Of a DNA stretch of 64,000 nt, positions 6,315 to 58,663 are shown in pieces. The notes below the pieces were generated by a model. That model was given only the letters and a program-made list of their open reading frames with translations, searched no databases and was not told the DNA's origin. A program made the position numbers and the translations under genes. Origin of the DNA: Lytechinus pictus (Eukaryota); the NCBI RefSeq assembly GCF_037042905.1, contig NC_087259.1:18228001-18292000 (forward strand), read 5' to 3'. Each line of letters starts with the position of its first letter. The first letter of the stretch is position 1.

Positions 6315-6445
6315 NNNNNNNNNNNNNNNNNNNNNNNNNNNNNNNNNNNNNNNNNNNNNNNNNNNNNNNNNNNNNNNNNNNNNNNNNNNNNNNNNNNNNN
6401 NNNNNNNNNNNNNNNNNNNNNNNNNNNNNNNNNNNNNNNNNNNNN
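6315..6445. other. Assembly gap (131 N)
   Basis: Run of N. Confidence 1.
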
Positions 6446-26574: not shown

Positions 26575-28449
26575 TAATGCGTATGTCGCCCAAGTTTACA
26601 GTTTGCTAGATAACAAGAAAAACTAGTAGTAACAATTTAACAAACATAGAATGAAGTATGAAGTGTATATTTCCTACTGTTTCACTCTGAGGAAATCCGA
26701 ATACAAAGTATTAGGGATTGGCAATGTGCCTTTGATATCAACTAGTAAAGACCATCCATATAGAGAGAAACGTGTAAAACGACATGACCATTGACCTTAA
26801 TACATCTCTTGAATGAAGTTTAATGACCATTTGCATCAAAATGGTCTGAGATATCCGAAAGGCGTTTAAATGCTTTACATTAATTACAACGACCCAGTGA
26901 AATTCTATTATGTTAAATAAAGTCATATATCACACCGTTAATTAACATTGCACATTTGAGAAACAGTTCCTCGACAAAAGCATGACAAAACATTTTTGTG
27001 CTAATAATATACAATATGAAATGTGTGATAAATATTTTTTTTCCTAGAAAACATTAAAATGACCCCTAAATTTTGCAGAGGACCATGCGTTACTGTCGTT
27101 CATAAAAATATAATAAAAAACTAACGTCCACATAATAACTCTGGAAATGCTGCTTAGTCTACCGAGACTAAACATACAATACTTGAATTGAGAAAGCAAA
27201 GAGGGTGTTTACCTCGCCTAGTTTTTAAAAAGCATTTAAAAAGTGATATGAACCGCTTTTCGAGTGACTAAAACCAAATTGAGAAACTGTTAAAAGTCAT
27301 ATTAAAAAAAATATTGCAAAGATTTATTTAAAAAAAAGTCCTTGTGAATTAAAAATTGTGCCTTCGTGGTGCGATTTTTTTGAGCATCTGATTAGATTAA
27401 AAGAACGACCATTTAACACTTAAACGTATACGTTATGATAAAACAACACTTGCCATCACATATCAAACTAGAACAAGTTTAATCAATCATGTCGAATTTT
27501 AAATAGTATGTAAATTTCCACTAAAAGCGCAATATATGGGAGGGAGCTCATGCAATTAAAATGGGGTCTCTGTACTCGATTCTGGACGACTCCTTGATCT
27601 ATACCATAGTTGTTCTTCGTTCCATTTTGTCTAAGACAACCAAACCCTTTAACAAATCATCACTTGATCTACGATGGTCACTTTGTGATAATCATTTCAC
27701 CCAAGGGTTGAATACTCTCGCGACCAATTTATCTAAATTTTTACCTGACCATTTGATCTAATACTAGTTCTTCAAATCATGTTCTTGACGTCACGGTGGT
27801 CTTCGTCAAAATGTGCACTGCACGAGAGACATAGCCAAGTGGAATTTCTTGAAATGACCAACTTTGCTCGGTGGCAACAATTACGTTTTGGACAAAATAG
27901 ATCAGATCAAGCAAGATTAAACAAAAAATAAGACATATTTGGATTAGACCAATTATAGTAAATTCACCGATAAATGATGCACATTGCTTTGCAGAATAAG
28001 CTTACTCTTGAAATCTAAACTAAAGTTGACAGACCCGTACAGAAGACAAAACTGATGGTCGACTTGAATTATTGTTAAATGTACCCTCGTCAGAAGTAAT
28101 GGTTACCAATCCTAGGCAGGCTTGGGTAGTTATGACCATCTTCTAACATGAGCTGACGACGATACTGAAGAAGAGAGAAAATGAATATTTAACACAATAC
28201 AAAACTAATAATCTCGATGTCATCGCACCTTATTTCTTCAACCTTCACTAATAATTGGTTTAAATTTGATTAGATTGGTATAAACAGAATTATAATAGTT
28301 CACTAGACTGCGTCTAGACAGCAAGGTGAACATGATGAATTCTAAATCAGAGGTACGGACAGGCAGTTCAGATTACACTGATGTTGCTTAAAGTGACTTT
28401 GGCATGTTGTATTCAAACATTTCATCTGATTCAAAATGATGATGGAGGC

Positions 28450-29267
28450 CTACATGTTTATGGATTTATTTTGAACATAATTTTGGGCGTGTGTTTTGGA
28501 ACTTACCATTTGGTGACGCCTCCTGTCATCATATTTGTCGCGATGTTCTTTAGGAGGTAATGTGGCGAACGGGTTGGGTAGTGGGTACTCTAAAGCCATA
28601 CGATAATCCAATGGGTGTTGATGACTGGAATATTGAAGGGCTAAACGATGGCGATCGGGAAACTGCAGGGCTAGTCGATGACGATCGGGATATTGCAGGG
28701 CCAGTCGACTGCGATTGGGATATTGTGGACCTAGTCGATGACGACCAGGGAATTCCAAAGAGAAATAGTTGTCTGGATATGCGAGGTCGCTACGTTGACG
28801 ACTGGAATATCCAAATTGACCAAGCTCTATGTCGCGCATGAGGTGGAAATTCTGGTTAAGTGGTTCCTCCGATCGGAATACGGCGTTCGGAACATTCTGT
28901 ATTTGAGTTATATTGTTATGTTTAGGGCGTGTGTCCAATCCTGATCCATGTTCCCTAAACTCTACCAGACTCAATGGATGAGGCTCTTCCGCCGTAACCA
29001 CGCGGTTATCATCTTCACGCGTGTATTTTACCAGAGCTAAACTGTTCTGTGCAGGAGGTGGATTTCGGCTTTCTGGAGTGGAGTATACGACGATATCATT
29101 GTGGATATAATTTTGAATGTTCTGTTTTTCGGCCTTCTTCAATTTACTCGTAGATACTATACAGCAGATGAATAAGAGTATCATTCCAATGAAAAGTACA
29201 ACCAGGACACCAATAACGATGGATATAATGATGGTGATGGATTCGGAATTTGTTACATCAACATGAT
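28450..29267 (-). CDS. Exon 24: transmembrane helix and cytoplasmic tail
   Basis: [28 protein letters not shown] followed by STSKLKK; about 230-aa tail ending KSINM-stop. Confidence 0.88.
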
Positions 29268-32200
29268 CTGTAAGTTGAAATAAGCAGATGGTAAGTAGGC
29301 TGGTAGAAGGTAAAAATAATGGAACAAAAGTGCACGAGGTATAATGGTTTATGGTCGCTTCCCAAGAAGTTGTGAGATTCCACCATCGTCATGATCGTAC
29401 ATCTTACTCGACCCCCAAGTTGCTCCATGCCTACACCAATACGCGCATTAGCCCATATGTACACATACAAACATCAGACTCTCGCTCACCCTCGCATAAT
29501 ATTCTCATCCACACCCTAACCCATCAGTAAATTGCCAATTCGTCTATTGCCAACTCGTCTACTCATCGCATGGTCTTCCTTCGTTTAGTCTAAGGCTATT
29601 CCATCCATCAAATTATTCAAAACGAAAATTGTAAATATATATAATGATAAATCCGTACAGCAAATGGAAATGGTCATTTTCAGTGGGGTAATAGTATATT
29701 TTTAGTCCAATAGTGACACCACGAGCCCCCCCCCATATTCCCTCCAGTTACTGTTTCTTTACCTCTTTCGCACAACCTTCCAGTGCCCGCACCAGGAGGT
29801 GAGATGTCTAGGAAGCCTTGGAGACAGGTGCAGGAGAATGACCCGGGTTCGTTGATGCATGTTGCCAAGGGTGAGCAGTCATTCTGGTCGGCAGAGGTGC
29901 ATTCATTTTGATCTGAGGAGATGGAAGATTTGAGGAGCATAGAATATATCGAGAGAGTAGGGGGAGGTTGTCAAAAGAAAGGAGAATGGAAGGAGAGAGA
30001 AGAAATGGAAGAATAACGGGAATAAGATGAAGAAGAGGACGAAGAACAAGAAGGAGAGGAAGAAGAAGAACGAAAACAAGGAAGAGGATATGATGGAAGG
30101 AGATAGAAATGGGATTAGATGGAAAGAAAATGGGAGTGGAAAACCGAAAGAGATACAGCGGTACGTCAAAATTCAAGATAACATTTCTAGATCATCTCAG
30201 CACTAACTTGTTTCCCAATATGCATAGTGACATCGAACACCAATGATAAAAGGGAAAACACCTTTCTGTAGGAATATTCAAATTATGAAAACCCAGATCG
30301 ATATTAAAATGGTCCCTAATCAAGGAAAATTTAGTGACAGACATTTTATCAATAGAGCGACCGCATTGTTAGCCAGCAAAATGATGTAGGTCTACCCCCC
30401 CCCCTAAAAAAAAACCCATTGTAACTGGGCTGGAAGGCATATAAGGTTCATTTCCAACGTTTTCTTACCATCAATCATCATGCTACTAGGGTCAACACTG
30501 ATTATATCTTGACCAGCTAAAATCGTCCCGCTCCCTAGACCTCTCGTAACGGCGGTTATAACCGCAGCCTGAGTTGAACCGACCGCAGCGACAAGATCAA
30601 ACTCTGCGATGACGCTTCCGGCACGAAATGACGTCAATGATACGTCCAATATATTCAAAATTACTGACAGGAGCTAAAGGATAAAAATATGTAAAATGTT
30701 TAAAGAAAAAATTACATCGCTAGGATTTATTACCATACAATTCGACAACATTCAGCCACACTCCTAAAGACCATGAAGACGTACAAGTACAACATTCGTT
30801 CATTGCAACACCTGTTTACGTTTTCTAAATCCCTACACATTAGCAAGAATAGATTTAAATTCATTTTTTTCCTCCAAAAATACATCGTCATTTGACCTTC
30901 CTCTCACTAAGAATATGAAATAAAGGCACTTTCCTTTGCAAGATTTGGATGCTGGTATATCCCTCCACACTTTTTTTTCTTCAAAATCCCCCGAGACCAT
31001 TAGCTTTGATCTTTCCCTCACCAAGAATATAAAACAAAAAGCCCTCTTTCTTTGCAGAAATGGGATGGTACTACGGCTAATCCTAGATCTATAGGTGTTT
31101 TTTTATTTTTTAGTAAAAAGACAACATTTTACCAATTATCAACGAAATAAAGATAATGGCTTATATCTTTCCAGTCGTTCTAATGTGCGATATACGGCAA
31201 AACCCTTAATTTCCCAATGCAATCATGTGAACGTGTTAAATTTCCAACCCCGTATACTCTCCAACTTAGACGTCTAAATGTGAAAGGAGATACATAAACT
31301 TAGAAAGAGCTGGTGTAGGTACTTTTCAACAATATCGCTACTCATCCGCCATCAGAAAAGGCGTCGCGTCGTAGACGACGTTCATTAAAATGTCCGAGAG
31401 TAGTATCTCAGCACCATGTACAATCAACCCCACTCATGCCGTAGTCACACCGGTTAAATTGACTCCAGACCAACCAAGTCTATTACGTAATTATCAATGG
31501 CATACCCTTGGTCAGTATGGAGTCTTATTCGTTGGTGTGACTGAAGATGGCGCCTTTTATGTAAGGTCGATTTCCGTAGATAATGCCTTCCTTCGATGCG
31601 TTGAAGATGTATTGTTACATCATTATCCTCATCACTGCAATGTTATAAGTTTTAGGGAAAGGTTATGTGGAATCCTCACCGTGCCTCGAAGCTGTTGAGC
31701 TAATTGTTGAAACCCTTCCCTCGAGGGATCAGCCAGAGCAGAAGTGTAAAGCAAAGGCGATCCGTTGATAGATATAAAACGCAGTGAACCTTTGTACGTT
31801 TCAGTTGCTTGAATAAATAGAAATCAATGCAAGGTAAATAATATAATTTTCATATACATATAATCACGAATACTTTCATAAAATAAAAATCATATGGACT
31901 TATGATTTTTCCAATATATATCAATATTAGTATTATGATTATTATCAGAGTTAAAATAAAAAAAAGTGATTACTGACCATCGTTATTATTATCATCATTA
32001 TCATCACATTTTCTATCATCATGGTTTAATACAAACTTTTGGTAACCTCATGCAGCCATCGGAAATGAAACAAAAAAATCAATCAATATCTTCGTTATCA
32101 TCGTCACATTTCCCAAACAACTCCATCGTTCAACAAACTAAATGCAAAGACCGGTAGGAAGAAAAGGTTATAAATCTAAAAATCTAGTAAAATAAATAAG

Positions 32201-35200
32201 AGAACTACATATAGAAAGATTGTGTCGGGGACAAAGGGTAAAGAGAGGGAGAGAGAGAGGCGAAGTTGGAGGTAGTACTTGATATTCTTACCTTGGCAAA
32301 CTCCATTTCTTTTGAGGTATCCAAGTCTGCAAGTACATAACCCAGAAGTACTACATATCTCATGACCTAGTGTGAAGCACTGGTCGTCATTTTCACAGGA
32401 CGCCATCACTAAAGAACGAGAGAGAGGGAGGGGTTATATTGAGATAGAGGAATATAGGAAAGAAATAGAGGAAAGGATTAGGACAAATAAGAGGGGGAAG
32501 GGGGGAATGGACGGCAGAAAAAAAAAGAGAAAAGAGAGAGAGTATCTGGAGTACTGAATTATCAATCGATGAAAGAGCAAGAGGTTGATTCGGGGCAATA
32601 AGTTAAATTTCGTTCTTATTTCTACGTAGTCTTTATACGTAGAGAGTACAGTTATACAGTTGAGAGTCGAATTGATTCGAGTCAAATGACCCATTTTACC
32701 GTGACGAGTGAATTACCGGTTAATGCCACCCCATTCTCACTCAAATTTATTCAAAAATGTATAATGATTATATTATGACGTAAGACTTACTCGATTCACA
32801 GTACTGTCCTTCGTAGCCCGTAGCACACTCACAGGTAAACATATCTTTGAAGTTTCTACACGTACCGCTATTAAAGCATGGCTGAGAAAGACACTCGTTG
32901 ATATCTGATTTTGGAAAAGAGATAAGATATAAATTCATTCAATATTTCATTCATTAAATAGGTTTGGATATCTTCAATAATTCATTAAGGGAGAGAGATA
33001 GAGATACCATGAGAGAAAATGATCAGAGATAACATGGACAGAAATGATGCAGAAAGAAATACGTAAGGGTGGTCTGAACGAGGAAGATTTTATTATTTTT
33101 TTTTTTCTTTCATAGAAAGATTTTATTCAAAATCAAACACGAAATCAATTCAATTTACAGAAAAATCATGAAGCGAACATGTTTACAACAACTGTACATG
33201 CGTACTATTATCTATTGATAAAACAAAATTATGATGTTTTTGACTAAGAACCCTTTCAATTTCACAATAGCGTTTCAATACGTTCTTAAAAGAACTAAAA
33301 CACAACCGATCTCCCTTACAACGTGTCGAAAAAATAAAATATTTAGCGTAAAGAATATAACGGTTTACAGTAGAGTATTGAGCGTCAGGGGCAACCAAAC
33401 AAAAGTAAATTCTTATTAAAATACACGTCATTGTTAAAAAAAGAGGTTTGGAAGTTTTGAATGAATTGTTGAGTTACAGGGCAGTCCCAAAACAGATGTG
33501 AAATGCTTTCAACAGAGGAAGAACAAAATGTACATAAATTAGATTCAGACAAGCCAATATCGTAAAGATGAACGAGGAAGATGCTCAAGACAGAAAACAG
33601 GAGAAAGGGGCAAGTGATATCATGGTCATGATTATGCGAGATTCAGTAATCTAATATCAAAAGGAAAGCGCTGACTTAAAATAATTTCATTTTAAACAGT
33701 GTGAACTGCTAATTACCGTCACATATCCTTCCATCACTCTGGGTAGAGTCTGTATACCCAGATAGGCAAACGCAGTCGTATCCACCGGGTGTGTTGGTGC
33801 ATTCAGCAAACGGAGAGCAATCATTTAACGACGAATCGCTGCACTCATCGATATCTATATATAAAATAACAAAATGACAAAAACAATTTTTTTTTAATCC
33901 AGATGCTCAAAATAGTATGCTTTATCTTTCGTGTCTCAAACATTAAGAAACAAGAGCTGCACTGACTTAAACATGTTAAATCAACTCTTTTGTGCTACTG
34001 CATTTTTTCTTCTTCTAATTGGCACCGATTAATTTGATTGTAAAAAAAACCTGTGATATGGGGTCCTGATCTCCTCTGTCCGACTAGAATAGGGTCAACT
34101 ATGACGTGAACAGGTTTGGGTTCTCATATGATTCTAAAGATGCTCTACTAGTTTGACTAGAACTTTTGCCGCTACACACTGGACTCTGTAATCTACCAGT
34201 CTTATCTGTCTATTAAATCTGTATAATATTTGTGATGAAATAATTACACTTTCTTACCGATGCAGAGCGTTCCTGGTCCATCTATGGAGTCTCCTTGATC
34301 TACAAATCCTTGAAGACATGTGCACTGATAGGAACCAACCGAGTTGTTGCAGGCAGAATAGACAGAGCAAGCGGAGTATTCTGTCTCATTGCATTCATTC
34401 AAATCTAAATGAGAAAGATATGTTCAACGTCATTTCAATCTTTTTTTTTCGAGGACGAAAAAAATTACTTTCTTTCTTTTCTCTTAGCTTTCCTCCCAAT
34501 TTTCCCAGTTTCTCCTCAGTGCTCACTCTTTTCACTGCTTTGAAATGGTAAGGGGATTTGACTTTCATCCCAAGCATCCCATCCTTACAACCCAAAATAA
34601 AGTTCGCACGTATCCACCATAAAGTATTTGTATAGTCCATGCAAAAGGAATTTTGTATACGGACTTTAAGAAAAACTGGGTAAGACACTACTTTTTACAC
34701 TGCGTTCAATTAGACAAAGATTGTGTTTAAGATGACGACGCCTAGCTATAACGTCAACAAATCGTTCTACAAAATTCATCATCCACAAAAATGTGTGAAC
34801 TTTCTTTTTCATTAACTTGCCTTAGAATTTAATATAATCAATAATTTTGGTATTGACAGACTATTGATAAAATACCAATTTGATGACAAAATTAGGATAT
34901 TTTTTACAGAAGAAAAATTTATCTGTCTTTCGAGCTTTAAGCGCTCCATTTTAATTCATCATTATTGAGAGCCATGTTGTACCTTGAACAGCAATAGAAG
35001 TAACATTCACTGTGAAAGATGAGTTTCCAACCGACAGGTCATCGGCGGCAAAGTAATAATTATCCGTCATTAGTTCATAAATCATGACGTCATTTGATGT
35101 ACTGTTCGGGTCAAGAACGATGTCGGCCTCCACTACGGAATTTCCGTTCAAAAATGATTTGATGTCGACGCTTACGACAGAGTTCACGAATATTTCCCAC

Positions 35201-36090
35201 CTTGATAACCGATGGTTAATCTGAAAAAAAGACCAATCACAGTAATTCTCCCTTTTAATTGGGGTTGATTTGTTCAGTCTATTCATGATAAATGAAAAAA
35301 AAAATCAAAGCTTTATATCATATCATATCTATCTTGGGTTAAAATCTGTCCAATCTAATTGAGGTTTGGGACAAATCCTTCATCTTTAAACATTTAAGCA
35401 TGGGGCTCCATGACTTAAGTGTCTTTTCAGATTCGTCTCCAAGTACCATTGTCTTCTCAATCTCATTCTTATCCAGTGTGACGTCACATCGGCATAAAAT
35501 ATCCAATAGAGAGATATAAAAAAAGCCCAAGTGTAATTAAGTATCTTGTCAGATTTATACTAATAATACAAGTCACCTGTTCGAACCCTTTGATACATGG
35601 TTATCACGAAGACTTATTGTTTACAATCGCAACTATTCGCAAAGAACATACTGAAATAATGAACTCAGTCCTCTTCGTCAATTCATAACGATATAATTGC
35701 TGTTATGAAGGGTGTGTGTTTTCCTACCGCATATTCTAGTTCTTCCGTTATCACTCCAATGCTAGTGTTAAGGAAGTCAAGGTATTTCACAGGTGACCCG
35801 TTGATCTCTGTCAGCTCAAAACTCATATCAAACCGTCTGGGAACTAATACAAAATATAATATATTCATTGTGGTTGTGTTAATGAATTAGCAGCATACGA
35901 ACACAAGAAAACCACCATCAACTTTACCATTTCATTAATTCTTAACACTATTACCACTACTCATACAACAATGACTACCATTTATACTTTTGCTGGTTTG
36001 CTGTTACTACTTCTACTACCTCGAATACAACTACTAATACCACCACCACCACTGTTACTACAACAGCCACTACTACTACTACAACAACTT

Positions 36091-36123
<33 letters not shown>

Positions 36124-39100
36124 TCACAGCAACATTAATACTACCAATATTACTACAAATACTACCATGTATACTGCAATACCACTACCACTGCTACTGC
36201 TGCTGATGATACTATTCCACTTCTATACGAGTTTGATATCACCAGAAAACTTGGATCTCTTATTTCATTGGCATAACCTGTAGATATCCCGCTTAAGTTT
36301 CTCCTCCCGCCCCCCTCTCTCTTTCTCTCTCTCTCTCTCTCTGGAATTGTTTGATAACGCCCAAAGATATAGGGGTACGTCAGTGTTTCAAAGAAGCGCT
36401 CATGGTACTAGTGCCTCTCATCTACTTATGCACAAAGTTAAATCTAGCGACTGCTTTTGGATGACTTACTTTGACAACCTTGCTCTGTCCTGATACGACC
36501 GTCTCCACAGCTACACAGTCCATATTTGCAAACCTCATTTCTCTCACATCGATCAGATGAGGTGCAAATTGTTTTACCTGCGCCGAGAAAAGAAGATAGC
36601 TGGTTTCAAATATGTTCCTATTTAAAGTGTCATATTCCAACCCACAAGAGTAGTACTGATTTGAGTATTGAAATTACATTTATTTTATGCACTTAATGTT
36701 AGGTAACAAATACAGGCCTACAAATATTCTTCTACTTCAATTAAATGACCATTACGTGATTGCCCAGCATGTCCATGAAAATACTGGGGGAAAAAGAATC
36801 AACCTGTTAAAGGGCAGTAATCTTATTGTAAAACATCTAGGTCTACAGGTATTTGCTGTAACTCTTGATTCAGACGTATCACATAAATTGGTTAGGAGTC
36901 GTCTACCCTATGATTTTCAAGTATTTTAAAGAGGACGAAAACAGGAAATTAAACAGAAAACATTAAAGAGTGTAAGAAATAGAGGTATGGATCTGGTAAA
37001 TTTTGTAACCCCTGAAACTCCCTGGTTATTCAATTGAAAAAAAAAATTAACCCAACATAACATTAGGTCGTCTCCCCTGAAATATAATAAAATAAAATAA
37101 ATTCCATAGCGCCACCTCTGGTTTGATTATCAACCCACGAAACCACCACTAAACGGTCTCCCTTTTCTCTTTGACCTACCGTACTCGCAGTGGAGTCCTT
37201 CATATTCCGCATGACAAGCACAGAAGTAGCCTGTGATTACATCCATGCAAGTTGCTCCATTGCTGCAAGGGTTGCTGTCACATTCATTGATATCTAAATG
37301 GTAAAAGAATACATTTGACTGTCATGACTACATCAAACAGTGCTGTTTATTTCTGGCTTACACGCGCTTTTGCTGTATGAGATTCCAGAGATTTCGTTGT
37401 GACAAAGGAGATTGGGAGTTTGCATCTGGTGGCAAATTGCCACTTAGTCTAGATCTGGACGTTAGTAGTCATTTGTTTGGTAACCCCTACATCAGTCCAC
37501 TCTCTTTTCACCTTCTCCTACTAGTAGTAGAAGAAGGTGAAAAAAGTGAGGGCTGATGTAGGGGTTTCCAAACAAATAACTACTAACGTCCAGATCTAGA
37601 CTAATTACCACTTGGTCTACACCTGTTATTACATCCATGCAAGTCGCTCCATTGTTGCAAGGGTTGCTGTCACATTTATTGAAATCTAAAGGGTAAAAGA
37701 ATATATTTGACTGTCATTACTATATACAACTTTTGCCATTTGAGATTCCAGAGATTTAGTTATGACAAAAGAAATTTTGAGTTCGCATCTGGTGGCAAAT
37801 TGCCACTTGGTCTACTCCTGATTTTTCTACTTTCCGTTTGGTCTTATCCCATATGGTCTAATCCTTGTTCGTCTCCAACCAAATCATCTACTTACCGTTT
37901 GGCCTACTTGCCAGTTACCAATTTACATTTACTATTTTATAATTGCTAGAAAGGCTGTAGACATTGGCTCGTATTCTGAAGTCAGGTTTAACTTGGACCA
38001 TGGTCTAACTCTGTGCTAAAATTATGGGAAGCCAAAAGTGCATTTTTTAATTAAGTTGTATGTTTCTTATGTTTACTGTGCTCTTCCTGATTCATCCATG
38101 GTGAAGCCAAACATCTTTTATACTTCCTGGACAATTATGAATGATTTGAGAGCCAAATGAGCTGAGATATGATATCTCTACTGTCAGTGATTTATGTAAC
38201 AATTGGCTTTCCATACTTGAACCACAACTTTAAACCTGAGAACCCGATTCAGAATATGGGCCATTCTGTCTTTTATCCACTTGGTCTGACACCTTTTACT
38301 CTATGTTAGATGACATGTTGTAGACCAAATTATCATTTGACCAAGCACAAAATGATAAAAAGACGCAGTGAAAATTTGACCATTTCCGCTATCATATAAA
38401 TCTAAACGATAGATCGTTGGACCAAATGGTAATTCTACCAAAATGAAAGTAGACCAAGTAGGTATAGTCATAACTGTGTTAGAGTTGTAAGAATGTGACA
38501 ATCCTTGGTATACAAAGTGGAAATAATCCAATCTATTACCCTATCATCAATGAGATCATCAATCCCATGATCGAAATTTGAAAGTTGTTGCATTGTCCGG
38601 CATATATTCTTACTAAAACAGATGCATTGATAAAAGTAATACAATTATAGACTGCTGTACAGTTTTTACATTTCACAATTGTTGGTAGTCAGGCAGCCGT
38701 CAGAACTCTTTTAGGAGCAGGACCGGCATGAAGTGCAGTCAAGAGTGTAGCGTATAACAAACCCATTATCATGCATATAGTGCCAAGATCGTATCAAATG
38801 AAATTACTTGTTTCACTAACCTTTGTCACACGTTTGTCGTCTGTAATCATTGGTGTGTAAAACATTGAGAGGCTGTAATCAAGATATAATCAATGATTAG
38901 AAAAAATCAAAGTGAGAATTCATCTCGATCCACAACCTTAAAACTTGTGTAAAGGATAGGCAAACAACGGGATTTCTTCTGGTTCCAAAAGGCAATACGA
39001 AATGGGGGAAAGAGCTTTCTGTTCATGCTCGGCCTTCATTCTGGAATTTCCTCCCTTAACATATCTGTGATATCAACTCCGTCGAATCATTTAAACTAAA

Positions 39101-48100: not shown

Positions 48101-51100
48101 CCACGGCCCCAGGTATACGGGTCAGCATAGGCATAATCCACTTCGTACCATCCTGTATCTTCGAGCCATGCCAAGGTTAATCTAGAAAACTTCCGACCAA
48201 AAGTAAGTTGCGGCGCCATCGATTCCGTCTAAAGTGGACGAAGGGGTAAATGCAACGAGAGCTGCAGTGGACCTCTATTTTGCACACATATAATTCCCGC
48301 CTTGAATGCAATAAAATTCTGCAAGCTGGTTACCACGTTTCACACTGTCAAATGGTATAAACACTCTTCTGTCAAGTTAATGAACAAATATTACGAAAGT
48401 ATGTTGTAAATACTAATAATGATTGTATTATTATCCATCTGTATACATGGTATAGTCACTTTGAAAATCACCATGCCATTTCGTTTTAAGTCTATGTCAT
48501 GGAAATTATATGCACTCAAAGAAACGAAATTATCTTACTCCATGAACCAATAGGTGACAATGGAATGGCAGAATATGGGCGTTGTGGATTTGGGACCATT
48601 AGGGTCTTTCGTAAAGAATCGTATAGCTTTCGATGATGTTTAAAGGACAAGTCCACCCAAACAAAAAGTTGATTTGAATAAAAAGAGAAAAATCAAACGA
48701 GCAAAACACTGAAAGTTTCATCAAATTCGGATGTAAAATAAGAAAGTTATGACATTTTAAGGTTTCACTTAATTTCACACAACAGTTATCTGCACATCCA
48801 GGTTGGTATGCAAATAAGGAGACTGATGATATCATCCACTCATTATTTTATTTTTGTATTTCACATACATTAGATATGTAATATTCTATTTTTTTCTTCA
48901 TTGTCAAGTGAAATCATAATTAATTACTCCCTGAACATGTGGAATTAGCATTGTTTGATACTATATGGTTCAGTCACGTTGGTCCTTATGGTCAAATCTG
49001 TAAAAAAAAACCGAAATATTGTATAATTCTAACAATAAAAAACAAAAGAAATAGTGAGTGATGGACATCGTCGACTGACTCATTTGCATGTCACCGAGTT
49101 GTGCATATCACTGTTTTAAAATGCCATAACTTTCTTGTTTTACATCCGATTTCGATGAAATTTTCAGCTTTATGCTAGATTGATTTTTCTCTGTTTCTTC
49201 AAATCAACGTTTTACTGGGGTGGACTTGACCTTTAAGGTTTATTTGAATGATTTATTATTATGTCATGATCTATACAATCAATCGTAATAATCAGTCCTA
49301 GGGTCAAACATAAATTCGTTTTACGGAGTGCAGGTGTCAGAGCATGGAGAGTTCCAGCAAGATCTACTATTGCAAGGCATACTATATATTGATTTTCGCT
49401 TTCAATCGGGGGAGCGTTTCATGAAAGGACTTGTCGGACGTTTTATCTGACAAGTCCCATTTGATCCGACAGTTACTATAGTAACAGTGCCTCTCAGCCA
49501 ATCAGAATCAAGGAAAGATGTCAGATCTGACAACTTGTCAGACAAAAATGTTGATGAAACGGTCCCCTGGTGCCTTCTTTACTCTTTTGACGGCGAATGA
49601 AAAAAACACACATCCAGAGACAACCTTACCGTGAATATCCGAGACTCAAAATGGCTAAGAGCACTTCCATCACCGCCATCGTCCTCAAGTTCAACACCTT
49701 CAATTGAGTCGCAACCAAAATGTTCTCGAGCTTCCCGCTACGAAACAAAACACAAAGATTAAAAACCCATTCTTCAGTATAGTTTTCTAGGCCTACCTGG
49801 ACCGTCCTCCGTAATCCTTCAGGTCCAACTTCAACTAGGTGCGCATTTTCAAAACTCTTTATCAACCGGACATTAGTCAGCTAACAACTCATCTCAGATT
49901 ATTGCCCAACGGGTGTGCACGGTTTTCATTTTACATGTCAGATATTCGAATTTTACTATCATTTCTCTTGCATGTCAACCTTAGATGATCGAGTTTATGA
50001 ATTCGAGATACCCTGCATAAGTACAGCAGATCCCTTCTTCTTCAGATCTCATTCTCTCCAGAATTTCATGAATGCTCTACATTTCTACCGTTGTTCGATA
50101 TTGGCATGTGTCTCCGCGTCATAAATATCAAAGGACCAAGCTTGGTTCCTTGAGGAACACAAAGCAGCCTATTATATATGGAACGCCATATGGCCGAAGT
50201 CCCCGAACGCGTTTGCACTTACAACAATGTTCGGTGTAACCAAGATTGTGACGTTCCGCTGTGTTGTCCCTCCACGGATATCCCAATCTAAAGTCTTGGT
50301 TCGAGCGACACGCTCACTCCATTTGAAGTGTCCAGCACTGTTAAAGAAGGAAAAACAATATTTAGTCTTAGGAACAACCATGATCTAGAGGGGTATCGAG
50401 TAGGAAGCCCAGTAAATTTTGTTATAAACGATGAGTTACTAGAAAAAATATAAGCCCCTGGTTTGAGTGGATATCGCAAATGGAATTTGTTAACCAGCTT
50501 TCATCATTGTCAAGAGAAATTCTCCCCCAAAACATTGCTGTTTTCAAAAAGATACGTCAGTCACTTTAAAGGTCAAGTCCACCCAGAAAATTATTGATTT
50601 GAATAGATAGAGAAAAATCAAACAAGCATGACGCTGAAAATTTCATCCAAATCAGATGGAAAATAAGAAAGTTATGACATTTTTAAGTTTCGCTTATTTT
50701 TCACAAAACAGTTATAATTGTGCACAACTCAGTGATATGCAAATGAGAGAGTCGATGACGTCCTTCACTCACTATTTATTTTGTTGTTTATTGTTTGAAT
50801 TATACAATATTTCAATTTTTACAAATTTGACAATAAGGACCAAGTTGACTTAACCATAAACTGTGAAAATAATGATAATTCCACATGTTAAAGGAAGAAT
50901 AAAGTTTTGTTTTATATGACAATTAGGGTAAAATTTGATTTTTTTTTTTTCATATATTTTATTCAATAAAATACAAAAGAAATAGTGAGTGGTTGATGTC
51001 ATCAGTCTGCTCATTTGCATACCGACCAGGATGTGCATATAACTGTTTTGTGAAATTAAACGAAACTTTAAAATGTCATAACTTTCGTATTTTACATCCG

Positions 51101-51299
51101 ATTGTGATGAAGTTTTCAGAGTTATGCTTGTTGGTTTTTTCTCCTTTTATTCAAATTAACTCTTTGTTAGGATGGACTTGTCCTTTATTAAACTCCTAAC
51201 GGCAACACTTCGTTTTTCCACATTGAAACGTCATGATTACATTTTATGGACGTGTTGATTCTACGGAAATTCTACAAAAAATCTATAATTTTAAATATC

Positions 51300-51338
<39 letters not shown>

Positions 51339-54300
51339 CATATTTTTATACTGTATTTAGAAAATGAATTTGAGATGGATCTTTAAAAATTATAGAATTT
51401 TAATTGCTCTGTGTCAAACAATTACTACCGAATATACGTGCTCGATATCTTTGCCTCGGAAAATAAATCATCGTTCGTTTCGTTCTCGAACAAACAGGAA
51501 CAATACAATCTGAATAAAAAAAAAAATTAGAACTTTTGTATCTCACCTACTGTCAAATTCAGGAAAACCATTTTCCTGCAGGGGTGTTAATGGGTCCCCA
51601 TTTTCATCTCTAAAAAATGCAAACATACCTACATTGACGCCCTGTGCGAGGAAAAGGAAAGAGAAGGATTAGTTCATATTTCTTCAGCTCATGTAATATT
51701 TTACCTCTTGTGATGTAGACACTAGTGTGGCACCCGGATATTTTGATAAGGGGTGCAGCTCGACAACCTAAATGTGAAGTCACTTTTGTTTTTCACAGTT
51801 GAATTTAGGATAAATAAAGAGATAATGGCTCAGATTTCTCGTTTGTACACCGTTCTTCTTCTTTTTTTCGTCCGTTTGTCCCCTATTTTCTATTTGTTTT
51901 AACGCCTTGAACAATCATGTAATGCTCTATAAATCTATGATCTTTATGCATTTAACCTTGGAATGTTAATGTTTCAACTCTCTCAAGAAAAGAATTACCC
52001 ACCACTGTATCTTCCTTATTTAGAAGGAATTACGAGATTCACAGCTATCCTACTCGTCAAAGGCATTATTATCATCTTCCACGTATTCGTACAGCTTTTT
52101 CACATAATACAACTGTCACAGGTTCATGATTTTTAAATGATCTTCTCACCGATTTAAAAGATTCCAGTTGGCTATATATACTTTTAAACGTAAATTGGAA
52201 ACTTATATTTTAAACATATATAATTAATGGCAATTCCTCGGCTCCCGATTGTTACGCTTAACTATTGTCAGTCCACCTTCCTCTGTTTTTATTTCTTTTC
52301 TTCTTTATCTCTTTCTTTTTTGGCAATATTTTTTACTGTCTCTCTCTTTTTCCTTTTTGGGTAACAAATTGATATTAAAACAAGTTGAAAATTACTTCTA
52401 ATTTTATAAATAGGGAAAAAATTACAAGATCTGGCTTTTAAATAGTTGACCCTTCATATCGTCATCTTATTGATATATCTGTATCTAATCTGAACGTTCA
52501 ATTTTATAATCTATGTCTTATTCATAATTAAATATTGTGATGTATTATTTCATCATAAGTGATTTTACCGTCTTTTGATGGATGTAACATTGTATTTGAT
52601 ATTTTGTGAGATATAAAAAATAAACCAAACTGAAACTGAATAATAGGGGGCGGTCACACATCCCCTCATTAAGCAATAAAGCAACTGGTCACTAAGGTGG
52701 GGTTGGAAAGATTATTGATAGTCAATGTCTAGAATATACATGAGTTATGGAGGGAATCAAAGAGCTGAGTCCCCTTTAACAAAGTGATAATTATAATCAT
52801 TACTCTTGCTTAGACAGCGCTTAAGACTTACTTTTTCAGAAGTATCTAAGCGCTCTACAGTAATGCACAAAAACACATTGTGGGTAAATTTCTTGTTGAA
52901 GGAAAACGCGTCATGGCTTGAAATTGAATCCACGTCCCTCAGATTTAAAGACAAGCGTCATAACCACTAGTCGACCACGATGCCCCCACATAGTAGATTA
53001 AAGTAGATTGAATTTAAAAGCATTTATTTGAGCTTAGGAAGGCGAATAGTTATATGCGATTGAGAGAATAGTTTACGTTCAAAATTGTTTAATATCCTAT
53101 TATAATGGCAATTTATCCTAGATTTAATGACGTGATCACTAGGCTGGAAGGGAGAAAATAGAAACTGTGTTGCTTTTAGATCCACTTTCAAAATACGAAT
53201 AAAAACCTTAAGTATTTATTGTAGAATTTGTGATTAACAATATGTCAGTCGTGCGTTTCTTATTCGAAGATTCATAGATCCTGTCCCCCCCCCCTAAATT
53301 TTTGTTTATCTTATACATAACATGATTGACATTGTGCTGTGCAAATAAACAGTTTTGTCCGTTTTAAACTGGTGCCCCCGCACTCCAAAAGAATATAATG
53401 TATCTTTACTTTCATTCGATATACGCGTAAATGCTCGAGTTGCTGATGTGATCTTACAAACAAAATGTACAGTATGTAAGCATGTAAAAAATCAAATGTA
53501 CAACAGCTTTGGAAACTCTTGTCGTGCTGTGAAAAAAGGTCATTAGACAATTAATTTGATTAAATAAATCTAATCAATTAATAACAAAATTACCATAAAA
53601 ATATACTCTATTCATAAATATTTGGTGAGGGCAAAAACGCCTCTGCCAGGGATCGAACTCGAGACCCGGTGTCATAACCACTAGACGATACAGGTTAGCC
53701 TAGCTATCTGATCGCACGATTTGTCGGGTGGAGATGACATAGCAGCCATGCCTCAACGCTGGATCAAGCGAATGTTTACAGAAAAATAGTTATAGAAGTG
53801 TGAGGAATTACAAACAAGCCTGCAACGTACATCACATTTGCCAAAACTGTTGTACATTCAATTTCTCACACCATTTTTACTTACTATTGCGTGGTAGATT
53901 TCATGCTGAACAACTTGCTGAATTACTTCCGGTGCGTATTGTCTGAGAGAATCCGGGCAAATATTCATTGCCCCTGCAATTGGTCTTGGGGTTCAAAATA
54001 ATTCGAATCATTAGTCAAAATAAATATTGTGATCTTAAAAAAAGATCACGTTAGTATCTTGAAATGAAATTAAAAGACTGTTACACTGAAAACATGGATA
54101 GAATGATGGGAAAGGATTATATATTTTCATTTTTGGGCAAGAGTTTTGCCAGATATCTTTGAATGGACAGTATATATATTATGATCCTGTCATCTGCATA
54201 ATAGGGGTGAAAATTGAAGATATCGAATGCATAATTTTATGTATAGGCCAATATAAGCAATAGTCCCACCTATTGAATGTTAGATCAAGAAAGCATGGGC

Positions 54301-57300
54301 CGGCGAATGCAATAAGTCCTTCTGTACATGCATTTACAGAGGTGACATATAGCACGAAATGGACATCGTTAATTCCTCTCTCCTCTGGTCCTCCTGGTTC
54401 GGGCTCGCAGTCGTACTCGGTCCCATTTTCATCTCGTTGGCATTTCAGACATGGCTGGAAAAGAATGGATAGTCAACCCACAACAATCGTGACAAACGGC
54501 AACAAGAAAAAATGACAATTATTCAAATCTGCGCCTCGGAAAAGTTTAGTAGACAGAGGGCGCATAATAAATGTTGTGTTTTTATTAGTAGTATTATTTA
54601 TAATAGTAATGATAACTATAATAACAAAGATGATGATGGAGATGGCATGTCAGGCGCGGATCGAGTTGGAAAAAAGGGACTCATAATCATGATAGTAATG
54701 CACCTCCTTTTGAGGACCTTTTCTTTCTCCCTCTCTTTGCTTGTCAGAGAATTTCGTACGAATGAATGATAATGAATTGCTGTTTTTTTTTTTTTTACGG
54801 AATAGCAGAAATACATGTACTCAAAACGAGTATGATGATAATGAATATGCTGGGGTTTATAACTGGCAACTTAATGATTGAAGGCAGAATAGAGACTAAT
54901 AGTTGTGAAAAATAAATAGTGTTTTTCTTCTTTGGCAGAAGTTTTGCACTTTATTCATAAGTCAATAACAAATTAACATGTTCACATATAAATGAATATT
55001 GAGATAAATAATATAGTCAAAGACTGATAATCAAATTATACATAAAGCATGTGATACATTAAGTTCAATAAAATACAGGGGCTAGCTATTTTAAACACAA
55101 AGGTGCTTGAAATATTAGAAGCCATACTAGGAATGATGATTTCTTTAAAAAATATAAGATAATATTATTGTGTTCGTAATCCTCATATGCCTTTTTCTGT
55201 AGATGACACGGGGTAAGGAAATCAATTTGAACAATGACATGAATACCTACTTTTAAATGATGTTCAGGTAATGTCGCTAAACCGCAAGTGGGACTTCCAC
55301 ATGTGCAGTTAAACACTTCTCCATTGAAGATGTATGACCCGGTTTCACACGACCTGCCATTGGAAATGAGAAATCGATGTTATCATTCACAGTGATCAAC
55401 TTCAAGTTTTCATTTAGTAGTCGTTTCGTAGCCCTGTTATGGCTCATATGAACATAAAAAAACGGGTAGAAAACGACACTATTTTGTAAATTTATTATTT
55501 CTCCATCTAGACGTTAGTATGCATGAAACGGCTTAATCGACCCGTTTGGTCTATTTTTAGACAGATTTGCTGTTGGTTTGAAAAATGGTGTCTTGCGTTT
55601 GCTGAAGACGGGTACATAGCAACTGGTTAAAATATCGTCGTAAAATTATAATTCAAATAAGGTGGTCGATTTTAAAATCATTGAAATTCAGTTGAATCAT
55701 CAACTTAACATGCTCAATGTAAATATTTGGCGGCTAACGGAGTAATGATTTTACAAAAAAAAAACTGTTATGAAAACTTTAATTACATTTGATGGCGGTT
55801 AAACCATCTATATGCATGATATGAGACCGTTGACTAATAGGGCCTTCTTTCGCATATTTGTTAAACATACTTGGCTAAACATATGCCATTATTGAGATTG
55901 ATTTGTCACAAAAATGTATAGTAGGCGTATACATACACCGACAGATTAGTTATCTTGACCACTTTTTTTTAGAATGTTTAGTAGCAATTTCATTAATGAA
56001 TAAAGAACAAATGATAACAAGAAGGTTTGAAATGTTACCTGGGGAAAATGAAGCTTTTTAATCTTTCCTTCACCCTGAGTTGTCTTGATATCAATTCGAC
56101 TGTTTGCTGAGTAGTATTCTGGGATTTAATGAAGAATAGAGAGTCGATGTAGCTTGAGTTAGGATTATGAAATACCAATTTAAGAGAAAGACCACTCTCT
56201 AAAAAAACCTTAAACTAGTGAATAACTGACTCCTCGGAGTGGTTAATAAATTCAATTAGATCAAGGGTTACTTTAATTTGTTGTTGAGTGAATTTTTCCC
56301 TTTTTAAAGTGAAAGTTATGTGAAACATTGAAATGTAGGCCTGCACTTTAAATTCACTCTAACATGTCTTAACTGAGTGATCACTGACGTCACTACCAAT
56401 GTCATGAATGTGATACATGGCCGTTGGAAGTGGGGTTGCTGAGGGTGAAGCTGAAGTAAACCCAACTGCCAAGATTTGTCTAGGGGTACTTCGTATGTTA
56501 CACATCATAGGCATCAGCCCCTGGGAATCAGGTTGGTATATAGGCCTATGCTAAAACGTCTCAATTTGACCGAAATCACCTTAATTTTGGGAGCGATTTT
56601 TTCTTGTCATTTTTTCCAAACCAGCCCCCCCCCCCCTTTAGAAATCGTTCCTAGGCCCCTGAGGTGATAGGTCCTTTTCCAGTTCTGCCCAACTACGTCT
56701 GTGGAATTCTCTTCCAGTTTCTATTCGTTCTTTCCCTAATATCACATTGTTCAGATCCAAATTGAACACTAATTTATCTGATGAAAAAGCCTATTCATCA
56801 TAGCTCCAATTACAGTTACTTTGATCTTTTATTTTAGTTTATAATTAATAATTACTAAATGTATTTTGTTTGTACATTTTAAATCATCTACATTGTAAAA
56901 CGCTTTTATATTATTTTCACTTACAATGACGACATCTTTTTCTGTTGAGTTTAGGACTGACTCATCGTACCAGACTTCAAACGTCATTGGTTGGCCTGTG
57001 GTCCTCTCAGATCTCCTTTTGGTTTGTATGTTAATCCCTGGTTTCAGCTTTGTAGAAATTCAAAAATTAAGTGAAATATTGATCAGTGAATGATAATACT
57101 TTTCAGGGCTTCGACTGTAGCAATGATAATAACAATATGCATTAGCGCTTCTTAGACAATTATATACATTTTTAATTTTAATTATCTGCCTTTTTGCTTT
57201 TGTTTGTTAATTCATATTACAACATGCTTATAATTTAGTGTCATCAAAAATAAAAACAAAAATATCTGGGTGATTCCATTGAAAAAAAAAGTTCTTGTGT

Positions 57301-58663
57301 CCGTCATGAACAACACGTGCAAATCACTTTGAGAGATTTCCGTCCGCAATAAAAACTAACGCCCATGACACAAATTTCGAAAATCTAAAAGCTTTTAGGT
57401 ACTACGTAAGGATGATATCAATAATCCAAGCGCGAACCGCGAGCTGAAATTTTGTAAATACTTACCCGAAAATGGGCCATCTTCATTATTCTTGTCTGTT
57501 TTCACGGTTCTTTCCCTTTTATACCCTCTTGTAATTTTCAATCCTCATTTGTTTTGTATTTTCTCTAGGTGACTCTAGAAATGACTGGGCACACCCTGGA
57601 ATGTGTCACAAATGTCTTACTTTTCGAGCAATTTTTTTTTAGTCTTTTCAATGTGAAAATCTAATTTTGGAATAGATTAAGACAGTTTAACATATCAAAT
57701 TACCATTTTCCTTTTCTGTTTCTGAAACTTCTTTGGGGTGTACCCCCAATTCCCCCCATCTACACGCGAGTATTTGTTACAAATAAACTCCGCTGGTCTA
57801 TAAATCATCATTACCATCATCATCATCATTATCATCATTACCATCATCTCATCATCATTCTTCTTCTTCTACTCCCTCACTATCATCATGATCATACGTG
57901 TCATAAATTATGATTCAACATTATTACAATGTTCCACCCTAAATTGTGGGGGGGGGGTGAAAATACAGGCCACACCCACAACTGATATATTTGGGGATAT
58001 ATCCCCCCTCCCCAGATCGATACGAAAAAACAAAATTATACAAAAAATCAAACTTAAACAAAAAATCAAACTTAAACTGCTAGTCGATCATACCCACCCC
58101 CTCTCCTTCACTCTTCCTCTTGCTTAAGTCTTTTAGAAATTGCACAAAAATCCTACGAATATTGTATTTATTTTGGCTTCTCAAGTCGGTTCCTGGTTAT
58201 GTACATGTACACTCGTCATCCCCGACCATTTGCCATACAGCAAAAGGTAGGGGATGGGACTAGTGGTATGTGAGCCGTACTCATAGACAAAATTTGTTCT
58301 AAAAAATGTAAAAGTAAGAGAGTTTGACTTATAACCTCGTTCGTAGGATGAGTGGTTATGTAAGACTCCATTCCCTCCATGAAAATCAAAATAAAACAAT
58401 GTATCATGAATGTACAAAAAAACATTCCATTTTGCGCCGCGACGCCATTAGCGTGGTTAGCGTGTACAATGAAATGTCGGGTTTTTTTAAGTACATGATA
58501 CCGTGTAATGAAGAGTGAAAGTTAAAATCCTTACCATTTTCAGCTCAACTTTTGGAACTTTGCACTTAGCGCCATCGGGGTCCATAAACATTTCCTCTCC
58601 GCGAGTAAAGCCAAATAAAACCATCGCAGAGATCACGGTGACCAATAAACAAACCCTCATCAT
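28450..58663 (-). CDS. Leishmanolysin-like (M8) metalloprotease fused to an EGF/SEA stalk, TM helix and cytoplasmic tail (24-exon model, 1257 aa)
   Basis: Exons: 58663-58535, 57047-56925, 56118-56039, 55353-55251, 54454-54270, 53984-53885, 51641-51547, 50337-50223, 49737-49630, 48228-48041, 40242-40122, 39580-39491, 38872-38821, 37293-37180, 35843-35728, 35220-34983, 34404-34258, 33854-33717, 32904-32791, 32408-32292, 31807-31680, 30673-30469, 29912-29763, 29267-28450. All junctions are GT-AG with matching phases; total 3774 nt, open frame. Confidence 0.8.
29763..29912 (-). CDS. Exon 23: calcium-binding EGF
   Basis: [34 protein letters not shown]...GRLCE. Confidence 0.93.
30469..30673 (-). 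CDS. Exon 22: SEA domain 2, C-half
   Basis: [17 protein letters not shown], containing the GSVI motif. Confidence 0.88.
31680..31807 (-). CDS. Exon 21: SEA domain 2, N-half
   Basis: [36 protein letters not shown]. Confidence 0.88.
32292..32408 (-). CDS. Exon 20: EB/EGF-like Cys module
   Basis: [36 protein letters not shown]. Confidence 0.85.
32791..32904 (-). CDS. Exon 19: EGF (fibropellin/Notch-type)
   Basis: [37 protein letters not shown]. Confidence 0.93.
33120..33575 (-). mobile_element. L1/Tx1-type LINE 3' fragment
   Basis: CCHC-type motif CTFC...[11 protein letters not shown] at the ORF2 C-terminus, followed by AATAAA and an A-rich tail on the minus strand. Confidence 0.7.
33717..33854 (-). 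CDS. Exon 18: calcium-binding EGF
   Basis: [34 protein letters not shown]...DGRICD. Confidence 0.93.
34258..34404 (-). CDS. Exon 17: calcium-binding EGF
   Basis: [36 protein letters not shown]...PGTLCI. Confidence 0.93.
34983..35220 (-). CDS. Exon 16: SEA-like domain 1, C-half
   Basis: [22 protein letters not shown]...[11 protein letters not shown]. Confidence 0.82.
35728..35843 (-). CDS. Exon 15: SEA-like domain 1, N-half
   Basis: [19 protein letters not shown]..., which parallels exon 21 (shared INGSP). Confidence 0.82.
35945..36215. repeat. Degenerate (ACT/ACC)n microsatellite
   Basis: ACTACTACT runs. Confidence 0.85.
37180..37293 (-). CDS. Exon 14: EGF
   Basis: [37 protein letters not shown]. 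Confidence 0.92.
37445..37603. mobile_element. Academ-like palindromic MITE (159 bp)
   Basis: TAGTCTAGATCTGGACGTTAGTAGT...ACTACTAACGTCCAGATCTAGACTA; near-complete hairpin; 9-bp TSD ATTGCCACT/ATTACCACT. Confidence 0.78.
37623..37685 (-). pseudogene. Truncated tandem duplicate of EGF exon 14
   Basis: [21 protein letters not shown]; 37622-37814 duplicates about 37230-37444. Confidence 0.75.
37966..38262. mobile_element. Harbinger-like MITE
   Basis: GGCTCGTATTCTGAA...TTCAGAATATGGGCC, 3-bp ATT duplication. Confidence 0.7.
38821..38872 (-). CDS. Exon 13: junction between M8 domain and EGF stalk
   Basis: cag|[17 protein letters not shown]|gttagt; enters in phase 0 and exits in phase 1. Confidence 0.7.
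38900..39225 (+). mobile_element. LINE (L2/CR1 group) 3' end
   Basis: G.RAF....P..WN.LP-like remnant, GCGCC...GGCGC stem and (TAT)n tail. Confidence 0.6.
39491..39580 (-). CDS. Exon 12: M8 domain
   Basis: [30 protein letters not shown], matching the QYFD...GG....DYCP region of LMLN. Confidence 0.88.
40122..40242 (-). CDS. Exon 11: M8 domain
   Basis: [36 protein letters not shown]. Confidence 0.88.
40585..40856. mobile_element. MITE with ~55-bp inverted arms
   Basis: TCAGTTGCCATGGTGTCATGGCGG.CTGGTTCTAAACA is inverted at about 40789-40830. Confidence 0.75.
41309..46679. mobile_element. Outer TIR element (CCGGGGG...CCCCGGG) split by the 41476-46293 insertion
   Basis: GCACTT.CATT..GACGAGTGGATACCATGCGCGACCA is inverted at about 46638-46679; TSD CCTTTATT (41301-41308, 46680-46687). 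Confidence 0.82.
41476..46293. mobile_element. CMC/EnSpm-like non-autonomous element (CCCAG...CTGGG) with long CCCATATGGG arrays
   Basis: 2-bp AC duplication; ~118-bp tandem array at about 41560-43200; further arrays at 45140-45410 and 45870-46280; a second CCCAGATAGCAAA left end at 45125. Confidence 0.75.
47448..47576. mobile_element. Harbinger-like MITE
   Basis: GGTCCCGTAACACAAAG...CTTTGTGTTACAGACC with CWG flanks. Confidence 0.65.
48041..48228 (-). CDS. Exon 10: M8 domain with Met-turn
   Basis: TESMAPQ...[43 protein letters not shown]. Confidence 0.95.
48644..49232. mobile_element. Kolobok-like MITE
   Basis: TTAA|AGGACAAGTCCACCC...GGGTGGACTTGACCT|TTAA. Confidence 0.85.
49410..49566. mobile_element. 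Harbinger-like MITE
   Basis: GGGAGCGTTTCAT...ATGAAACGGTCCC. Confidence 0.65.
49630..49737 (-). CDS. Exon 9: M8 domain, third Zn-ligand His
   Basis: [36 protein letters not shown]. Confidence 0.95.
50223..50337 (-). CDS. Exon 8: M8 domain
   Basis: [37 protein letters not shown]. Confidence 0.92.
50570..51184. mobile_element. Kolobok-like MITE (same family as 48644-49232, opposite orientation)
   Basis: TTAA|AGGTCAAGTCCACCC...GGATGGACTTGTCCT|TTAT. Confidence 0.82.
51547..51641 (-). CDS. Exon 7: M8 domain
   Basis: [30 protein letters not shown]. Confidence 0.92.
51940..52640 (+). mobile_element. LINE 3' end (Crack/Daphne-like)
   Basis: Degenerate ORF2 C-terminus, pyrimidine-rich UTR, AATAAA plus (AAACTG)n tail. 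Confidence 0.5.
53636..53695 (-). mobile_element. tRNA-derived SINE head fragment
   Basis: Minus strand shows A-box-like TCTAGTGGTTA and B-box GAGTTCGATCCC; not a complete cloverleaf. Related remnant at about 52915-52985. Confidence 0.5.
53885..53984 (-). CDS. Exon 6: M8 catalytic HExxH exon
   Basis: [34 protein letters not shown](G). Confidence 0.95.
54270..54454 (-). CDS. Exon 5: M8 domain
   Basis: [36 protein letters not shown]. Confidence 0.92.
55251..55353 (-). CDS. Exon 4: M8 domain
   Basis: SCETG...[19 protein letters not shown]. Confidence 0.9.
56039..56118 (-). CDS. Exon 3: M8 N-terminal region
   Basis: [27 protein letters not shown]; splice phases fit. Confidence 0.8.
56925..57047 (-). 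CDS. Exon 2: propeptide end / mature start
   Basis: ...[23 protein letters not shown]; basic processing site. Confidence 0.8.
58535..58663 (-). CDS. Exon 1: signal peptide and propeptide
   Basis: [26 protein letters not shown]...AKCKVP|gtaagg. Confidence 0.78.

Follow-up and report, generated by a model that had tools for sequence, protein, structure and literature searches.

The gene LOC129277364 of the sea urchin Lytechinus pictus lies in a 64,000-nucleotide stretch of contig NC_087259.1 (positions 18,228,001 to 18,292,000 of the forward strand; hereafter the window, in whose own numbering all positions are given). Its product is very likely a type I membrane glycoprotein, in which a leishmanolysin-type (M8) protease is carried on a stalk of EGF, EB, and SEA modules, followed by a transmembrane helix and a cytoplasmic tail. 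The M8 part and the EGF/SEA part are encoded by one mRNA. The gene structure as modelled is practically certain. The gene has 26 exons on the minus strand, running from 58663 to 28090, and encodes a protein of 1299 amino acids (aa); all of its 25 introns are GT-AG. The spliced product is 100% identical to P0203, which is RefSeq XP_063966172.1, "uncharacterized protein LOC129277364" [Lytechinus pictus].

The window has a G+C content of about 36% and a single assembly gap (6315-6445). Between 58663 and 28090, its minus strand holds numerous short open stretches bearing M8 motifs, followed by EGF, EB, and SEA-like pieces. No family matches were found in the window outside 28000-58700. Relatives were identified with a single M8 exon as the query, in a set of 1.8 billion representative proteins, and the matches were long sea-urchin M8+EGF proteins. 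The 26-exon model was then curated from the RNA junctions in the linking region, with the L. variegatus orthologue as a guide. The initial annotation had located the gene on the correct strand and at the correct place, with its start ATG at 58663 and the HEIYH, SHFE, and KRRSER motifs all present. In-phase GT-AG splicing was likewise confirmed; the proposed 24 exons and 1257 aa are corrected to 26 exons and 1299 aa, as in RefSeq. The coding end had been set at 28450; the tail exon instead splices from 28507 to a last exon at 28164-28090. This final coding junction (28507|28164) was taken from the exact match to P0203 and the 96% conservation of the last exon in L. variegatus, not from reads.

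One gene and one transcript

The RNA evidence over 36200-40400 comes from two stranded RNA-seq runs (X19 and X20) and two sets of transcriptome contigs, all from the same species. Four linking junctions were found: 40122|39580 (56 reads in X19 and 79 in X20), 39491|38872 (25+39 and 47+44 reads, including an allelic form that differs in the last base of the exon), 38821|37293 (59 and 92 reads), and 37180|36577 (54 and 60 reads). The second and third of these are exactly the junctions that had been named beforehand. The exon reads all come from the same strand, and their depth is comparable on all six exons, on both sides of the M8-EGF link. Reads leaving exon 11 enter the end of exon 10 (48041), and reads leaving exon 15 enter the start of exon 16 (35843). 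No transcript starts or ends were seen in the RNA data within 36200-40400. In addition, a spliced transcript contig of 5537 nt spans all four linking junctions at its own positions 1320-1806. Its placement is compatible with untranslated regions of about 90 nt at the 5' end and about 1.5 kb at the 3' end of a 3.9-kb coding sequence. The junction reads, the even depth, the lack of starts or ends in this region, and the spanning contig establish that the M8 and EGF/SEA parts are one mRNA, and the single gene proposed at the outset is thus confirmed.

It could be argued that two adjacent genes, one for a secreted M8 peptidase and one for a Notch-like EGF/SEA membrane protein, were misjoined by prediction or by rare read-through. 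Pairs of this kind were indeed annotated in older RefSeq releases, for both L. pictus and S. purpuratus, and the link hangs on a 52-nt exon. However, the linking junctions have 54-92 reads per run, which is about equal to the junctions within either half. The exon depth is equal across the link, no transcript start was observed in the linking introns, and the spliced contig crosses the link. Moreover, the EGF1 exon, which begins in phase 1, lacks its own signal-peptide exon, and the link junction is conserved in ten family members. The two-gene reading is ruled out by the RNA junctions and the spanning contig, and the probability left to it is minimal. The older records, which hold separate 'leishmanolysin-like peptidase' and 'neurogenic locus notch' (Notch-like) pieces, are a warning for annotation; the risk that automated prediction would split the gene had been foreseen.

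Some differences between the RNA reads and the assembly were also observed. At the exonic sites 36517, 36522, 37253, 39520, 39538, and 39491, about half of the RNA reads are unlike the assembly, which points to heterozygosity of the animals sequenced. At sites 36524 and 40184, every RNA read is unlike the assembly. The variant at 39491 alters the last base of exon 12, and leaves the Tyr codon unchanged.

The M8 protease head

Exon 1 (58535-58663; all exons are on the minus strand) contains the start codon, the signal peptide (aa 1-22), and the beginning of the propeptide, with Cys34; it was placed by the model, which equals P0203. Exon 2 (56925-57047) encodes the end of the propeptide (to about aa 62), with the KRRSER motif at 57020, and the start of the M8 domain. 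The N-terminal part of M8 continues in exon 3 (56039-56118). Exons 2 and 3 are both 100% identical to P0153 by tblastn, and exon 3 also passed the model check. Exons 4 (55251-55353), 5 (54270-54454), 7 (51547-51641), and 8 (50223-50337) encode further M8 sequence, and were placed by tblastn and the model check. The zinc-binding motif H234-E-I-Y-H238 (aa 234-238; at 53905) is located in exon 6 (53885-53984), as supported by the motif itself, the Pfam exon scan, the model, and the family alignment. Exon 9 (49630-49737) contains the third zinc ligand, His339, within the SHFE motif at 49656. The Met-turn Met350 and the central part of M8 are encoded by exon 10 (48041-48228), whose end is entered by an RNA loose end at 40244. 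Exon 11 (40122-40242) is also M8, and was placed by the RNA junction 40122|39580. Exon 12 (39491-39580), placed by RNA and by the comparison with LMLN, carries the last LMLN-similar stretch, which ends at a 'CP' motif at aa 477.

The single-exon Pfam scan identified Peptidase_M8 on four pieces. Two matches were significant (E 1.3e-8 on exon 9 and E 3.4e-11 on exon 10), and two were weak (E 0.024 and 0.053); the last of these, on exon 5, has 12.6 bits, below the cut-off, and covers profile positions 160-190. On the whole protein, Pfam PF01457 scored 157.6 bits against a cut-off of 21, over aa 171-532. The HExxH residues (H234, E235, and H238), H339, and M350 do not vary among the family members whose sequences cover them, and the propeptide Cys34 is conserved in all family members.

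A complete M8 C-terminal subdomain is not present. The PF01457 match covers the profile only to position 468 of 529, and its end overlaps EGF1. Compared with the canonical L. variegatus LMLN, the L. pictus protein has 38% identity over aa 44-477, and the similarity ends at aa 477 of 1299 and aa 480 of 700, respectively. Past that point, some 140 further M8 residues and a WAP domain follow in the canonical protein. Because the similarity stops at aa 477 while LMLN goes on, the sequence comparison indicates that the stalk replaces the last ~140 aa, the bulk of the C-terminal subdomain of M8, and that the switch falls essentially where exon 12 meets exon 13.

The M8 head is probably catalytically active, as judged from its conserved residues. 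A different reading is that the head is inactive or substrate-trapping, and that the protein acts as a receptor in adhesion or signalling. It draws on the missing C-terminal subdomain, and on the long tail and the EGF/SEA stalk, which are typical of receptors and mucins. However, both old subclades of the family retain the Met-turn, the catalytic Glu, and all three zinc ligands without variation, and dead enzymes usually lose these residues. The receptor reading is therefore considered unlikely, and a working protease is preferred. The KRRSER motif was also evaluated as a furin-type activation site of the whole family, and was rejected in that role for its lack of conservation.

The stalk and its SEA modules

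The stalk begins with the 52-nt exon 13 (38821-38872), which was placed by its two RNA junctions (39491|38872 and 38821|37293) and by the intron phases; the linker covers aa 480-496. Exon 14 (37180-37293; Pfam EGF E 1.7e-9, with RNA junctions) encodes EGF1 (aa 497-535). It is followed by the EB-like module EB1 (aa 536-571) in exon 15 (36470-36577), with an RNA junction and a Pfam EB match of E 1.6e-4 and 22.1 bits, slightly below the 24.3 cut-off. The modules listed in the initial annotation are all present in the stalk, in the order given; this EB1 between EGF1 and SEA1 was the one that it missed. SEA1 (aa 572-689) is split between exon 16 (35728-35843), whose start is entered by an RNA loose end at 36470, and exon 17 (34983-35220). 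Two calcium-binding EGF modules then occupy exon 18 (34258-34404; aa 690-738; Pfam EGF_CA E 9e-9) and exon 19 (33717-33854; aa 739-784; E 8e-10). Exon 20 (32791-32904; Pfam EGF E 2e-8) encodes a further EGF (aa 785-822), and exon 21 (32292-32408; Pfam EB E 1e-6) encodes EB2 (aa 823-861). SEA2 (aa 862-972) is encoded by exons 22 (31680-31807) and 23 (30469-30673). The juxtamembrane calcium-binding EGF (aa 973-1022) is in exon 24 (29763-29912; Pfam EGF_CA E 5e-8), whose boundary is the best fit to the orthologue. Exon 25 (28507-29267), placed by orthologue fit and the model check, encodes the transmembrane helix (about aa 1031-1056) and the larger part of the cytoplasmic tail. The tail has about 240 aa (to aa 1299) and repeated YP(D/N)R(H/S)RLALQ motifs; its last 24 codons and the stop codon are in exon 26 (28090-28164). 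EGF, EGF_CA, and EB matches were obtained on eight stalk exons in the single-exon Pfam scan.

The ectodomain contains 15 sequons for N-glycosylation. It is fully made up of M8, EGF, EB, and SEA modules, and has no Pro/Thr/Ser-rich tandem-repeat domain. A SEA-EGF-transmembrane-tail base is present, formed by SEA2, the juxtamembrane EGF, and the membrane helix. All stalk modules are flanked by phase-1 introns, and each SEA has a single internal intron, in phase 0. Phases 0 and 2 occur among the M8 exons, and exon 13 turns phase 0 into phase 1. Since every stalk module is bounded by phase-1 introns, the pattern is a classic exon-shuffling signature, in agreement with the exon-shuffled origin suggested earlier.

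The SEA modules were analysed by structure models and sequence profiles. In the AlphaFold models, SEA1 (predicted local distance difference test, pLDDT, of 79) and SEA2 (pLDDT 69) both have the order beta-alpha-beta-beta-alpha-beta. Foldseek searches against the Swiss-Prot models gave template modelling scores by query of 0.62-0.73 with a probability of 1.0, and nearly all matches were SEA-domain proteins. They include enteropeptidase, MUC1, TMPRSS11D/E, matriptase, agrin, IMPG1/2, adhesion GPCRs, and the S. purpuratus 63-kDa sperm protein, which is the 'S' of the name SEA. For SEA1, the top matches were the SEA domains of enteropeptidase, TMPRSS11D, and agrin. In enteropeptidase, MUC1, and the other familiar matches, the aligned residues fall on the SEA region. 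Both modules, as modelled, carry the SEA alpha/beta sandwich fold. A SEA1 sequence profile found no match in PDB, so SEA1 is assigned by its fold alone. The SEA2 profile, built from five family members, matched the MUC1 SEA domain (E 0.0027), with FRAG aligned to the FRPG of MUC1, the residues directly before the known self-cleavage site. SEA2 has the cleavage-type motif FRAG|SVIAEF (G922|S923, in exon 23), and the G-S pair is invariant in every member having SEA2. The chance that SEA2 cleaves itself is judged to be about even. Lytechinus SEA1 probably does not self-cleave, because an Asn interrupts its G-S pair (G-N-S), and SEA2 alone would be expected to do so. The combination of M8, EGF/EB, SEA, and membrane helix proposed from the open reading frames is therefore borne out by Pfam for M8, EGF, EGF_CA, and EB, by the folds of both SEA modules, and by the MUC1 match of SEA2.

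Several results weigh against the overall reading of a SEA-tethered membrane protease. Pfam SEA (PF01390) gave no match at E 0.1 to either L. pictus module, as single exons or as whole regions, and on a Diadema relative it reached 20.1 bits, below the 26.4 cut-off. The confidence of the SEA2 model is moderate, and the G|S motif is absent from Lytechinus SEA1. In the head, KRRSER is not conserved outside Lytechinus, and the missing bulk of the C-terminal subdomain could impair folding or activity. As for novelty, the databases already contain the architecture, in predicted proteins of at least five urchin species.

The two 'SEA' modules might also be generic ferredoxin-like spacers, not true SEA domains, and without autoproteolysis. 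The lack of a Pfam SEA match in the L. pictus protein is in line with this, and so are the weak Foldseek E-values against PDB (2.4e-4 for SEA2 and 8.6e-3 for the best SEA match of SEA1), which are mixed with other alpha/beta sandwiches. Yet 27 of the 30 best Swiss-Prot matches of SEA1 and all 30 of those of SEA2 are proteins that we take to be SEA-domain proteins. The alignment of FRAG with FRPG falls exactly at the MUC1 cleavage site, and the G-S pair is conserved as described above. The spacer explanation is thus rather improbable, and the modules are treated as SEA domains below.

In the proposed mechanism, the protein would be made as a zymogen, kept inactive through the Cys-containing propeptide. 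The active zinc protease would then be held above the cell surface, at an estimated ~20-30 nm, on a rigid stalk. Self-cleavage of SEA2 at G922|S923 would leave the protease chain held non-covalently and able to be shed, and the tail would connect the stub or the intact protein to the cell interior. A more specific and tentative possibility, drawn from the sequence features, is a sea-urchin 'mucin-protease' hybrid. Here, an active M8 protease would be held solely by the non-covalent SEA2 junction and released by pull or by stub processing, and the stub with its 240-aa tail would then signal. Such a hybrid would have evolved independently of the SEA-bearing membrane serine proteases, as their counterpart of type I topology and metallo class.

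Family, origin, and related systems

The fused M8-stalk family has at least two genes in L. pictus, among them LOC129277364 and its paralogue LOC129277370, three genes on one chromosome in L. variegatus, and LOC755833 together with two ~915-aa paralogues without SEA2 in S. purpuratus. It is also present in Diadema antillarum. In the searches made, the fusion was not found outside sea urchins, and the brittle star, sea cucumber, and hemichordate proteins are canonical LMLN only.

A maximum-likelihood tree was reconstructed with the M8 part. The fused proteins form a single clade with 100/100 support, which is sister to the echinoderm canonical LMLN proteins (93/94, not starred). The fused clade has two subclades. 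Because each of these contains a Diadema sequence, the tree indicates that the first family duplication is older than the Diadema/camarodont split. The fused proteins are not one-to-one LMLN orthologues, as the urchins retain a separate canonical LMLN (P0236 and P0241) and the fused proteins have their own clade. The family is therefore lineage-specific, as suggested before: the fusion was found in sea urchins only, in a clade separate from canonical LMLN. A possible origin is an LMLN duplicate in the echinoderm lineage that diverged fast and gained the stalk. The ~140 C-terminal aa of M8 would have given way, at a boundary between exons, to a cassette of phase-1 modules such as those next to the membrane in mucins. 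It was also observed that the echinoderm canonical LMLN proteins (P0236, P0241, and P0154, from L. variegatus, Diadema setosum, and Apostichopus) have a C-terminal WAP domain (PF00095), and that the vertebrate LMLN proteins listed are without it.

Animals have only a few M8 peptidases (LMLN/invadolysin and CIROP), and little is known of the substrates of these enzymes. LMLN/invadolysin (MEROPS M8) shares the catalytic fold and motifs with the fused family and is its neighbour in the tree. However, the canonical urchin LMLN has about 700 aa with M8 and WAP, whereas the fused proteins have an EGF/EB/SEA stalk, a membrane helix, and a long tail. CIROP/LMLN2 of vertebrates is a type I membrane M8 protein, and to our knowledge is without an EGF/SEA stalk. 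The top cluster in the language-model search was 'leishmanolysin-like peptidase 2' (score 0.83), which is a lead only. No protein named CIROP or LMLN2 was found among the best 120 Diadema M8-domain matches, in which the named proteins are all LMLN, and the named clusters that were inspected did not include one either.

On the stalk side, the MUC3/12/13/17-type transmembrane mucins and MUC1 have the same order of a membrane-proximal SEA, EGF, transmembrane helix, and tail, and the G|SV motif of SEA2 aligns at the MUC1 cleavage site. Clusters of mucin-13, mucin-17, and mucin-3A were also listed in the language-model search. The urchin protein differs in that it has no Pro/Thr/Ser-rich tandem repeats, and its outer part is an enzyme (M8). 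The type II SEA serine proteases (enteropeptidase, matriptase, and TMPRSS11/HAT) are surface proteases on a SEA-containing stem, and both SEA modules have their best structural matches among them. However, they are type II rather than type I proteins, and serine rather than zinc metallo-enzymes, and the protease parts are non-homologous. M8 is also joined to EGF-type modules in some plant, ciliate, and sponge proteins. These differ in having teneurin-type or EGF_2 repeats, no SEA, and no mucin-type base, and they belong to unrelated lineages.

Full-text literature searches turned up no publication that deals with these loci or with a SEA-bearing M8 protein. The claim that no such protein had been described agrees with these searches, but not with the sequence databases, where proteins of the family are recorded in RefSeq as 'uncharacterized protein' or 'leishmanolysin-like peptidase'. 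The family would represent an M8 core detached from its own C-terminal subdomain and placed on a mucin-type, probably self-cleaving stalk, with several paralogues retained since before the Diadema/camarodont split. As a natural experiment, it bears on the role of the M8 C-terminal subdomain; it also adds a new example of SEA-tethered proteases and illustrates exon shuffling cleanly. Genetic work is possible in L. pictus, which makes knock-outs of these genes feasible.

The introns of the gene also contain several repeats. In intron 13, a repeat at 37892-38314 has a summed contig depth above 10,000 on both strands, with many 'opposite strands' joints at about 37990-38240; it looks like an abundant foldback/inverted-repeat element, of which many copies across the genome are transcribed. 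At 37293-37800, a partial tandem duplication of some 390 bp has copied the last part of intron 13 together with the first half of the exon for EGF1. The upstream duplicate copy is followed by a short palindromic insert resembling a miniature inverted-repeat transposable element, at about 37440-37620. The resulting half-copy of the EGF1 exon (37685-37626, minus strand; 86% to EGF1 by tblastn) was evaluated as a coding exon and ruled out, as its RNA depth is zero in all four runs. Intron 15 has a trinucleotide microsatellite at 36005-36123, with about 40 copies of the unit TAC on the plus strand. Intron 10 contains a tandem array at 41541-43024, whose basic period is about 131 bp, with further scores at 262 and 395 bp, and whose copies match at 84-90%. 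Dispersed copies of the array extend up to about 46300 and create long 'MGPIW...' pseudo-open reading frames on both strands. The array and its copies have lengthened this intron to 7.8 kb.

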